From assembly GCA_963924565.1 (NCBI GenBank), contig OZ004609.1, positions 29,760,001 to 29,824,000 of the forward strand: a stretch of DNA of 64,000 bases. The letters are read 5' to 3'. Origin of the DNA: Ascidiella aspersa (Eukaryota). The position numbers and the translations under genes were made by a program. The notes beneath the pieces are model-generated. The model made no database searches, was not told the DNA's origin, and saw nothing but the letters and a program-made list of their open reading frames with translations. Below are positions 25,201 to 31,200 of this stretch, in pieces (the stretch's first letter is position 1; the number at the start of each line of letters is the position of its first letter).

Positions 25201-28200
25201 TGGATTCCAAACGTTGAAATGTTGCCTACTCCTATATAGGCTTTGATATTGCTGCTAAGCTGAACAGCAATTTTCGTGAAAATTTACGCCTTATTCTTAC
25301 ACGTTTTGCCTTGCTGCCGGCGCTATACGCCCATTCGGCAGTTTATTTCCCAAGTTACGAGTGCTTATTTGTGCGTCTTTGCAGGATCCTTATAAACCCG
25401 GGCAACCACGTGAAAGTGCAGGAGGGCACGCTCGGATTCTTCATCGCGCAATCCGCCAAAGAAGTCAAAAGGTAAAGTCTAGAGGCGCGAAGCATTATTT
25501 ATTGATGTTCGCTAGAAATGTGTAGGCGAACTGTTAAGCAAACAGTACAATTTCAAGCGCAATAATTTTAAGTTTAAATAAGAAAATTATATTTTATCAG
25601 CCTACTGTCCTACATTTTTACACAGCGCTGTTTAACCGTCCACATACGCTTCTGTTTATTATTTACCTACGTAGTAAAGATTTGACCTGTTTTTAATACG
25701 TAACTAGATAATGATCGAACGTAATCGCCCTTGACCAAATCTTATCGGAAATCCTATATTTTATTCGACATTTTTTATGCTACTACAGTTTTAGTCAGTG
25801 GTTCATAAACACATTTGGTCTACCATAGCCTGCATGCAATATAAATCGATGGCTACTTTCTAAATACATATTTTTTGCTTAACGATATAGCGTGAATAGA
25901 AAAAAAAATGCAGAGCATATAAAAATAGTTCTTGATTTGTTGCACCTTAATCGTTCACATAAATGTTTTACCGATAAACTCACCAGTAGAGCGAAAATTA
26001 GAATCCAAACTATTTATATATTTCGGCGTTCGAAAATGGCAGCTTGGGTTGCCGAGCCACCCTGTTTGGAACCACTGACTATGGACATATGGAAGTATAT
26101 TGATATTAGAATAACGTCCTTAGAGCGCTGGTATCCATGGCATATAGGATGCAACCATATTTGCAAAGACAAAACGTGATGCAATTTAAGCAACCACTTG
26201 GCATCACAGCAAGGCTATATGACCGCTTTCGCATTTTAACCTGTTTATGTGCCTTACGCGCCCCGTAGAGGTGGAAAAAAAAAACGTCCAATTTTAAAGT
26301 AAACGATACTGTAGGCATTATAGGGAAGTTTGCATGCAAAAAAGTTGCATTGCGGACCCTCTGTATGGCTCCCTAGTATCAGCGAACGCACACGCACGTG
26401 TGTGCTTGTGTGTGTGATTTCTACCGCAGGGCCTACGTCTACTGCGAGGAATGCCACGCAAAAGTCACCCGGCCGGAACGCGTGCGTCTGTGCCGATGCA
26501 AACACCGTAAGAGAAACTAACACTGCAGCAACAGTAGCTCGCAAACTTAGCCTTGCGTGTGTGCGCAATGAACGAAACTAGCAACGCCGAAGTCAGCAGC
26601 GGTATAGTGCGTTATGCAGTTACTCAAGAGACCAGGGCGCCATGTACAGCCTGGTTTGAAAATTTCCTTTTAAGCTTTTTTTTAACGTTTTTGTGGAAAA
26701 TTCCCCTTTTTTTAAACATTTGGGTAAAAACGAAATTACCATCATGCTCTCTTTCCATATCTAACGATTTGTCAATGAATTTTCTTATGGGACGCTGTTT
26801 TAAGTTTTAACAGCGTTCTCATTTCCCTTCTATTTAACTTCATTCTAATTCGGCATTTTAGGCCAAGATAAGAACAACTTAAGCCGTATATGCACACATG
26901 TGTATATTTGCAACTGGGATCAGCGACTTCGTAAGATCAAAAAACAAAAGTCGCCCATTTTGCCTCGAGAGTAACTGACGCACAATGCTGCTCTGACGAG
27001 GTGACGCAAAATGTCCGACGGTCGTGATTGGCTGTCCGCAAATTGGTCGCACGTCACCCGATAAATTACCAAATGAGCGGTGCTATGTCGTCACCGACAA
27101 CAACGGCAAAGTAATACGCGTGACTCGGCCTTAATTTGCTTTTGTTTTGCGTGTGACAAAGGTTGGGGCTCAATTAGCCCGTTGCCGGTGAACGGTTGGC
27201 GACTAATTTCGCGCCGATTCACCCGGCCCTAGTAATTGCGTTTTAACTGGGTTCGTGGCTAATTCACGAGCCGTTTGGCGTGAAAATCAACATTCCAGCG
27301 TTCGAATTGGATTCTGCCGTCTCACCGCCGCCGCTGGTAATATTCCATTACGCACAGGGTCGCCGCTGTTCAAGCAAATTCAAACAGCGGGTCGCTTATT
27401 TCATGTGGCACAAAGTTTTGAAAATTGCGTTGGGGCTGTGTCTATAGCTTGCCGTTCAATGTTTAGATAAGGCCTGTTTAAATTATACCCTGGGTAATGC
27501 TAGATAAACTAGATTGGATTTTTGCCATTTCTATTGTCCTGATACCGTAATGCGACAGCAACTATAGACAGAACTTATTTAACGCAGTTCACCGATTAAA
27601 ACGATTAACTACACGTAAAGACCCAAATATTTGCTCGTTTTTTGTTACGTTACGTATAAACTTCCCACGGGTCGCTAGCAAACTTGTGTGATTTTAATTA
27701 TACATCATTTGACTGTTAAATTCCTGATTTCTGACGCTTTCAAAACGCATTGTTTGCGGGGCGGGTCACAAGTCTACCAGGAGAACCTCTGTGTGCGTTT
27801 TTAACGTCAGGATTCGTGACACGAGACAGTCGGCCCTGATAATGACAAAATAAGGAAATAGCCCATAAGGAGATATTCTGGGCGGCACCTTGTGAAAATA
27901 ACACCTCTAGAACTATCAAAAAGGCGTTTGGAAGCTTCGCCCAGTCAACAATTTGCACAAAGACGGCTCTTTCTGACTCTGTCGTGAGCAAATCGATAAG
28001 AGACGGCTCGTTGGCATTTTGCCAATCTCGAATCACGCCTAATTTAAGCCGAAAGCGATCGTCGGTAGATTCGACGAGACGGACAAAACGCCCAGCGCCT
28101 CGGCCCTAGGCAATTTAAACGAAAATGCAATCAACATCAATCGGCCCGGCGAGAAACGAGTCAAATTGCATGCGAATTAAGCGGCGGCTCATTTGTAATT

Positions 28201-31200
28201 GTCTCTGCATCCCGCCTTGTGTAATTTGCGCAGGGCGCTGGTCTACTGTAAGCCGTGCCACGACGACCTGGTCAACCCTGAGCTGATCAAGTCGTGCGAC
28301 TGTAAGCGCAAGCGGGACTCGGCAAGTAAGTATTCTTTGCGCGACACCTGGCGGCGTCATTTGTTATGTGCGTGAGTGTGTTTGTGCGCGTTTTGGTGCC
28401 CGATTCAATTTGACAATTTTACTTGATTGTTGATTTAGCATAATGTAAAAAAATCATGAGCAATTTGCCTGACCGGTGCAACGGAAATCGTGGTGGACGA
28501 ACTGAGTCAAACTCATTCATTTTTTTATTTATTTCCAAAGTGTGATTTCGTTAAACTGATTTCTGAATGAAACCGTCTTTCCAGTTAAAGGAATATAACG
28601 TCGTTGTAAAAACAAATTAGGAAAAATTTAACAGTATGGGAAGTCGAATTCGTTATTCGGCCGTAATTTGTCCAGAATTAGCCAAAAAATCTAGCAAAAC
28701 GACATTATATGGGAAACATTTATATTTACCAGTCATTATTGACCTTTTAAACATTTTTTTTTCATGTGACAAAAACTTGCTTATTTCAATGCTAAAACTT
28801 GTTGCAAAATCTTCCCAACATTTCCGCTGCAACGGTCAAGGTTAGCGTTTGGTTTTGGGCCCAATAATGTAAAGGTCGTCCATTGATTTGGCAGCATGAA
28901 GCTACATAGCCGTCATTGCACCAGAATTTCGATTGATGCATTTGTTTTGTTTAATTTTTTTACATAATTGCGCTGCAAATTCACTTTTGTATAACTGTAT
29001 ACATAAGATTTTTGTTATTCCTTACGCTCTTTTCATGTTATTTGTAGTTTATATAAATAGTGTAATGGATAACTGCACCGTAGAGTGTCGTCCTGTAACG
29101 TAGTAGTATAAACTTCAATGTTATAGTGTCCATGCTGCCTGCTCATAAATCAATATTTACAATAACAAAATTAAATCCCAACTAAATGAAAAATCACATC
29201 TATCTGTGATAGAGAATTAGTGTTTCAATCCACCGTTTGCTACCATTATTCGTTCTGTAATACTTATTGCCAAAAGTTAGCCCTTAACAGCAGTGTTTCT
29301 GATCTCAAAATATATAGCATTAGCATTAATAAGTTTGAATTTACTTAAAAATTAGCCATGTATTTGTATTGCGTCCGCAATTTGTTCAGATTCTGGAAAA
29401 ATCTTGCTGAGAACCATAATCTCAATAAATCTAACCATGTAAAACTTCTGCAATCGGCAAATCAACGAAATCACACGGAGACCCAATTTTGGGTCACCAC
29501 CCTTCGGTTGAGAAACACTGATTTACAACAAAACCAAGTCCCAAACGGTTAACCTTCTAGGACACGTTAGCTTTCCTGAAATAGATTGGGAACAATCCCT
29601 GTCCCTCACGAGCTTTAAGCCTTCCCGGCGGCCCACTTCAAACTCGTTCCATGTGTTTGTGTGTGTTCCTGTGCGTTTTGCCCGTCACCGTTATCCTGTG
29701 AATGTTGCATGTTGCAGGAAAGCGAAGTCTCCTTCGGCTGCTGGGCCTTACCGCCAAGCCAAACAACGGTGAGTCGTTCTTCTCGCGCATTTACCCTCCC
29801 CCTTACCCCCTCAACAGCCCCCTGTTGACCAAGGGGTTAGGTAACGACCGGTGTAGTCGGTGCACACAGTTTTGGACCCGATTGTTCGGCCTAGGGATCG
29901 AAAATTCTCAAAACTGTTGGCTTTCGATTTCAACAAAACTGTTGGCTTTCGATTTCAACAAAACTGTTGGCTTTCGATTTCAACAAAACTGTTGGCTTTC
30001 GATTTCAACAAAACTGTTGGCTTTCGATTTCAACAAAACTGTTGGCTTTCGATTTCAACAAAACTGTTGGTTTTCGATTTAGCCTATGTAAATTGACAAT
30101 GGTAATTGCTCTTTCGTTTGGAAGATTTTTCAACGACGTCAAGGCACAAAATTGACAACTAATCGGCCAAAGTTGTAAAGAATAACGATTCTCCAACCTA
30201 TACCACTTTCTGTTGGGTAAAAATGTACAATCGGGTCTAAAACTTGAACCGAATTACCCTTAAAATCTAATCGCCATGTAGCTTGCATTTATGTTTTTCA
30301 TGTTTTATTTTGTCTCTGTTTATAAATAGTCACCAGAATTTGCTTGTCCAACGTGCATGCCGATCGTTCGTGTTTTTTCTCGTAGTTGGTGGACTTATAT
30401 AGGCATTAGGCAAAGTTTTGGTACTTTCAAAAATGAAAGAACACCGAAGGCTATATCTAACCAAACAGTAACCAAAACATGTGTAAACGATAGAGTATAT
30501 GTAGAGTTTGAATATAACTTATTTTCTTTCGGGATTGTTTAGTCCTAATGTGTGCTTCGTTAAAAAGTGAGATTTGATTTTACATGCCTGACAATCCCAA
30601 TAACTGTAATGCTTTCCAAAGATATTGTGCCAACTCGTTTTACGAGTGTTTAATTTTCTATTGACTCGCAGTGCGTAACAACTCGAACTCGAGTCGCTTG
30701 CCGCTGTGGCCGCGCAAGAAGTCGAGTACAGGTAAGCAACTGCCGCCACACGTGTAGGTATGCCGTTACGTCATTGCAACTCGCTTCAAATAACAACTCG
30801 CGCGCCTTCATCGACTAACACGCCATTGCTTCGCTCACAACCACTTATGTAACGCAACAGCAAATGATTATTTTGAAAAAATGAACTATTTAAAATGGGA
30901 GGGTTAAACGGGTAAAATTTATTTTCCAATTTCGATTTTTATATAAAAATGACGTTTCCTCATCAAACGCAAGGCAATTTTTTGTCAACAAAATCTAAAG
31001 AAAGGGGAATTCTATTTAGTTTTCAACCATATTTTTGGTATAAACACTGAGACGCGTAAAATTATGGTTTTATGCGTGCAACAATAAGCTTGAGAATCAT
31101 ATTTTACCACGTTTGCTAACTTGTGTACGCCGCAACTTACCGGAGTTGCTTCTTTGCTCAAAACAGACTGCTTTGTAAAAATCACGCGGCCGTAACAAAA

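Follow-up and report, generated by a model that had tools for sequence, protein, structure and literature searches.

The 64,000-nucleotide (nt) stretch of Ascidiella aspersa DNA analysed here (contig OZ004609.1, positions 29,760,001 to 29,824,000; the window) carries on its + strand most of one Slo1/BK channel gene, in which the exon that closes the RCK1 domain with a CxxCH...CxC segment is present as a tandem duplicate, referred to here as exons A and B. The gene encodes a BK channel alpha-subunit with two RCK domains and a BK_channel_a region: in Pfam searches of the window, exon translations at 14896, 37852 and 41560 match Slo-like_RCK (PF22614) and the exon at 18349 matches BK_channel_a (PF03493), and the translated window contains the K+ pore signature TVGYGD near 9990 and the calcium bowl DQDDDDDP near 44937. 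Judged by its RCK2 exon, the Slo1 gene is single in the 308-Mb genome. Protein searches were carried out exon by exon.

Structure of the two exons

The initial annotation described two intact exons, 1.7 kb apart, that encode the same segment with the same phases, lengths that keep the frame and good splice sites, and direct reading of the sequence confirms this description in every detail (Table 1). The first base of each exon completes an AGG (Arg) codon, so that entry is in phase 2, and one base remains at the end of each, so that exit is in phase 1. The acceptor of A reads ...tttctaccgcag/G (ending ...ctaccgcag) and its donor ACC/gtaaga, and the acceptor of B reads ...taatttgcgcag/G (ending ...ttgcgcag) and its donor CAA/gtaagt. 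Since the two lengths both leave a remainder of two when divided by three, a transcript that contains both exons or neither is shifted in frame; translated by hand, the A-to-B join reaches a TGA stop ~17 codons on, within B. The constant exon that precedes them shares 79-86% protein identity with its counterpart at two other tunicate loci (see below).

We note that read-through past the donor of A (26507-26521) would add HRKRN before a stop, a sequence similar to the KRKRD tail of B. The GTAAG of this donor could derive from a CGCAAG-like codon pair, in which case the 15-nt difference in length between A and B may reflect a shift of the donor and not a deletion.

Homology of A and B

A and B are identical at 11 of 25 residues (44%), share 51% DNA identity over their common 75 nt and find one another in a blastp search within the window with an expect value (E) of 3e-8. 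Searched against the whole 308 Mb of the genome, each matches only itself and the other. Among the sequences of the PDB, the best match of each is the stretch of human BK at residues 608-635 (E of 0.003 for A, over 608-631, and 2e-6 for B), and about 30 nt 5' of the two acceptors can still be aligned, beyond which no similarity of the flanks remains. A segment of 25 residues is short enough for one to ask whether the resemblance arose by chance, or whether A came from another gene; we find this scarcely credible, since A agrees with B in strand, phase and position inside one BK gene, since each is the other's unique match in the genome, and since the best PDB match of A is BK itself and similarity persists in the acceptor regions.

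At the position of human residues 612-616, CEECH in A and CKPCH in B each align to CKACH. The residues that have survived the divergence of the two exons are A-x-V-Y-C-x-x-C-H ... P-E ... C-x-C-K, so that all four Cys and the His, including the downstream C-x-C, are retained in both, as had been claimed from the first reading of the sequence. The further claim that the two segments differ in local charge is also supported, and amounts to a charge reversal around the motif (CEECH-AK in A, CKPCH-DD in B): relative to B, A has E in place of K6 and AK in place of the DD that follows the His, and over the common 25 residues the net charge is +3 for A and 0 for B. The KRDSA tail of B, with its [RK][RK]xS-type site, is absent from A; the site is not conserved in other tunicates. 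In length and 3' boundary exon A equals the vertebrate exon, having 25 codons that end in CGCKR plus a split codon, where the boundary of the vertebrate exon was placed from the L/I/V residue at the junction in three proteins (P0019, P0042 and P0062).

Table 1. Positions of the duplicated exons, their surroundings and candidate splicing signals in the window
Feature	Position	Strand	Remarks
Constant upstream exon, end of RCK1	25385..25471	+	Ends ...AKEVK + AG; donor gtaaag; would serve both A and B
TGCATG (RBFOX-type hexamer)	26331..26336	+	99 nt 5' of exon A
UG-rich tract gtgtgcttgtgtgtgtgatttctaccgcag, 3' splice region of A	26400..26429	+	
Exon A, divergent copy, 77 nt, 25 residues	26430..26506	+	Phase 2 in, phase 1 out
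A-B intron, 1,727 nt	26507..28233	+	U2-type GT-AG
TGCATG	28167-28172	+	67 nt 5' of exon B
Exon B, conventional copy, 92 nt, 30 residues	28234..28325	+	Phase 2 in, phase 1 out

The exon at other tunicate loci

Two further tunicate Slo loci (L005 and L004) were obtained from one ENA assembly, in which the RCK2 exon served as the starting point for a walk along the contigs. Each has one exon at the CxxCH position, ALVYCKDCHEGVMNPELVKMCECKKKQELA in L005 and ALLFCKICHQDVANPESIQSCECRKKLEAM in L004, and both of these are 92 nt long with phases as in A and B. Over 25 codons B is identical to the exon of L005 at 16/25 residues, to that of L004 at 14/25 and to the vertebrate exon at 15/25; the corresponding values for A are 13/25, 9/25 and 11/25. 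By this comparison of sequences B is the conventional copy. The vertebrate exon shares 11/25 residues with the single exon of L005 and 10/25 with that of L004, both of which are necessarily functional, and A is at least as close to the vertebrate exon as they are.

A second CxxCH string, AFYVCTCCH, lies 162 nt 3' of the L004 exon, but is without an acceptor in the correct phase and was set aside as a chance occurrence. A degenerate DNA pattern for YCEECH...CxCK, run over metagenome contigs, had as its sole match a bacterial open reading frame of 800 amino acids (L006), likewise attributed to chance. Protein searches with the open frames of A and B produced no candidate, and a representative search together with a search with the RCK2 exon returned mostly fragments, with no tunicate closer than ~81% at the RCK2 exon in the protein collections searched.

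The ENA sample from which the two loci come (ERZ21736675) contains two distinct tunicate Slo1 loci, L003/L004 on ctg12117l and L005 on ctg14368l, whose CxxCH exons are identical at 14/25 residues; they may represent either two species in the sample or a gene duplication. Positions 11599-14394 of L003 hold reverse transcriptase and endonuclease open reading frames (RVT_1, Exo_endo_phos), on the opposite strand within a Slo intron, that belong to an element resembling a long interspersed nuclear element (LINE). A separate sequencing run that is labelled as another organism (X4) yielded low-depth contigs that match positions 25420-29245 of the window, exon B among them, exactly or almost exactly. 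The organism so labelled is probably the same species or a very close one, and the run is then uninformative on conservation.

Probable selection on exon A

Synonymous sites are saturated in every comparison made, with a proportion of synonymous differences (pS) of 0.77-1.06. Between A and B, pS is 0.77 and the proportion of nonsynonymous differences (pN) is 0.41; against L005, pN is 0.32 for A and 0.24 for B (all by the Nei-Gojobori method). At six of the 11 residues that A and B have in common (A1, C5, P15, E16, C23 and K24) the codons have changed silently, which rules out recent gene conversion as the source of the identity between the two exons. Despite 49% divergence there are no frame-breaking indels over the 75 aligned nt, the difference of 15 nt being confined to the 3' end, and all five positions of the motif fall within the 11 unchanged residues (hypergeometric P 0.0087). 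If one copy had drifted neutrally, the probability that its frame would still be open and the five motif residues still present would be 0.014 at p=0.25, 0.002 at p=0.35 and 7e-5 at p=0.49, the observed divergence. The combination of saturated silent sites with an intact frame, intact splice sites and an intact motif is thus unlikely to be the outcome of neutral decay (P ~0.01 or less), and argues that A has probably long been translated. On these sequence comparisons, A and B are probably both under purifying selection, and A has probably spent most of its history as a translated exon under selection; the segment is nevertheless short, and a history of this kind would fit also with a recent loss of use. 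In DNA contigs from two individuals (X1 and X2) we see variants in the introns and, among the variants listed, none inside exon A, which is a weak indication.

A tree built from the 25 columns places A among the tunicates. Neither a clade of A and B (approximately unbiased test, p-AU 0.17) nor a clade of B with L005 and L004 (p-AU 0.18) is rejected. The length of 77 nt, T13 and R17 are common to A and vertebrates; the length of 92 nt, L2 and N14 are common to B, L005 and L004. These character states hint at an old duplication followed by loss elsewhere, and we give them little weight.

Proposed alternative use of A and B

We lean towards the interpretation, drawn from the layout of the gene, the homology of the two exons, the signs of constraint on A and the recurrence of such pairs in Slo genes (PMC9741552), that A and B act as mutually exclusive alternative exons. 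The donor at 25471 would be joined to either 26430 or 28234, and whichever exon is chosen would then be joined to one common downstream acceptor of phase 1. Transcripts with B would encode a conventional tunicate BK subunit; transcripts with A would encode a subunit that has the four Cys and the His with the local charge reversed and without the KRDSA tail. Inclusion of both exons or of neither would shift the frame, in the former case with a premature stop ~17 codons into B, and would give non-productive transcripts. The initial annotation had likewise called the pair probably mutually exclusive, and for this claim the tandem duplication and the arrangement of phases and lengths speak in favour, while the RNA does not: in the only RNA run (X5), sampled at about 6 in 100, no spliced junction reached the listing threshold for either exon. 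Sense-strand reads from this run cover introns and exons alike at a depth of 0 to ~9, and the BK gene is therefore transcribed in the sample. Coverage appears to end near 26506, at the donor of A; only a handful of fragments are involved and we have discounted this as a splice signal. In the middle of the A-B intron, at 27178-27645, there is an island of sense-strand RNA with a depth of 3-4.5 and zero coverage on either side, which probably consists of a few pre-mRNA fragments and could possibly be an unannotated exon or element.

The missing junctions belong to a set of observations that weigh against mutually exclusive use. In L005 and L004, neither tblastn nor tblastx nor a motif scan detected an A-like exon in the interval bounded by the constant and MFHW exons, and protein and metagenome searches turned up no A-like sequence. 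The branch that leads to A in the 25-column tree is very long (3.9, against a median of 0.58), which also fits relaxed constraint, and the tests of constraint are themselves compatible with a recent loss of the use of A. Finally, a search for docking and selector sequences, whose pairing in the RNA could enforce a choice, gave only palindromic TGCATGCA duplexes of -30 and -28 kcal/mol, energies that fall inside a background of -25 +/- 6. The initial annotation had named, as the joint outcome that would tell against it, a lack of spliced reads for one exon in any tissue together with disruption or absence of that copy in related species; the absence of A at two other tunicate loci agrees with one half of this.

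The lack of spliced reads, the absence of A from the other two loci, its long branch and an acceptor that lies in a UG-rich and not a clean pyrimidine tract would all be expected if A were a pseudo-exon, that is, a former or never-used duplicate that is ignored by the spliceosome, with B constitutive and only one form of the segment made. Yet a duplicate that was never used should not have kept its frame, both of its splice sites and five motif residues while its silent sites became saturated, nor should it be as close to the vertebrate exon as working tunicate exons are, so that only a recent inactivation would fit. We regard a pseudo-exon as unlikely, while taking it seriously.

The frame shift caused by joining A to B suggests another role, in which A is a poison cassette that some cells splice in alongside B and that lowers the output of BK through the stop ~17 codons into B. 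The UG-rich acceptor and the nearby TGCATG would suit an exon whose inclusion is regulated. A cassette of this kind, however, would have no need of an open frame resembling BK, or of four Cys and a His, over a divergence that has saturated the silent sites, and we consider this role quite improbable.

If A and B are indeed mutually exclusive, two ways of enforcing exclusion do not apply: the A-B intron of 1,727 nt is too long for steric exclusion, and an incompatibility of U12 and U2 sites is ruled out since every site is GT-AG and of the U2 type. The UG-rich tract at A may mark a weak, regulated acceptor. The TGCATG copies 5' of A and of B both sit inside a common TTGCATGC, and five of the ten plus-strand copies of this hexamer in the window fall within 25.8-30.4 kb (at 25831, 26331, 28167, 29706 and 30354), a concentration that was noticed post hoc. 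It is possible, from the sequence, that the UG tract and the TGCATG hexamers regulate the choice of exon.

Relation to other Slo genes and possible function

Slo genes have repeatedly and independently gained tandem duplicate exons that are used in a mutually exclusive manner, the events in the human, fly and worm orthologues being unrelated to one another (PMC9741552). Three such events are known in Drosophila slowpoke, where the choice of isoform affects both the conductance of the channel and its sensitivity to calcium (Lagrutta et al. 1994, cited in PMC9741552). Like A and B, the slowpoke exons are adjacent homologous exons of a Slo gene, and one of them is used per transcript, as proposed here for A and B; unlike A and B, which are known here from genomic sequence, they have been established by cDNA and functional proof, and the origins are independent. 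The slowpoke events reportedly lie in the body of RCK1, away from the CxxCH exon. Alternative splicing at three sites gives C. elegans slo-1 twelve isoforms (Johnson et al. 2011 and Glauser et al. 2011, cited in PMC4039745). In Brugia, differential splicing affects the RCK1 region of SLO-1 (PMC6779273). The exons of C. elegans slo-1 are independently arisen alternative exons of a Slo1 gene, as A and B would be, and differ in that a different exon is concerned, in that they are experimentally verified and in that their use is coordinated across sites.

Among chordates, human and mouse KCNMA1 have a homologous-exon event, the alternative exon 9 known as 'alt9' (PMC11758846, PMC9741552). This is a tandem substitution of homologous exons in a chordate BK gene, as proposed for A and B, but it lies in the linker between S6 and RCK1. 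The CKACH exon is single in vertebrates as far as we have found, compared with two copies here. In mammals, STREX and other cassette exons are inserted shortly after CGCKR, at splice site C2. This hotspot of alternative splicing is likewise at the RCK1-RCK2 linker, but STREX is an insertion, whereas A and B would substitute for one another at the preceding, normally constitutive exon. In the literature we found no report of a tandem duplication at the CxxCH exon, or of one in tunicates. The suggestion in the initial annotation that the duplication might be new thus needs qualifying, in that tandem exon duplications of Slo genes are already published (PMC9741552) and none was found at the CxxCH exon. 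The pair is probably a new instance of Slo tandem exon duplication, at a new exon.

The heme regulatory motif of human Slo1 is 612-CKACH-616 (PMC2266614, PMC12346439), and the CxxCH-bearing segment is disordered in solved BK structures (PMC12346439). The human motif is followed by DD, so that CEECH followed by AK in exon A has the opposite local charge. By analogy with the mammalian work (PMC2266614, PMC12346439), we infer that the choice between A and B could alter sensitivity to heme, carbon monoxide (CO) or redox state, or could alter gating. A more ambitious proposal, about which we are more doubtful than confident, is that the pair is an old, tunicate-specific exon substitution through which one BK gene provides two heme- and redox-sensitive versions of the segment, oppositely charged around the motif, with the His and all four Cys forming one selected site. 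Were this correct, cells could set their sensitivity to heme, CO or oxidants by splicing, and the residues that survive the divergence would identify these five as a single cofactor or metal site that extends beyond CxxCH alone. If both exons are used, nature has in effect carried out a swap experiment on the regulatory segment of BK that is least understood: two versions with 44% identity have lost none of the Cys and retain the His, an indication of which residues matter, and they would offer a ready pair of isoforms for comparing responses to heme, CO and redox state. Tunicates would then be a fourth animal lineage with an independent Slo exon duplication, at an exon that is, as far as we have found, distinct from those of the published events.

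Repeats in the neighbouring introns

At 29909-30080, in the intron 3' of exon B, a 25-nt unit is repeated almost perfectly in tandem (6.9 copies, 99% matches). Two other stretches, at 25150-25305 and 29362-29517, stand out in the DNA run with a depth of 416-2303 compared with ~57-117 nearby (7-20x), and the same two stretches attract many divergent reads and loose ends, as well as RNA reads on both strands. They look like high-copy interspersed repeats inside introns.

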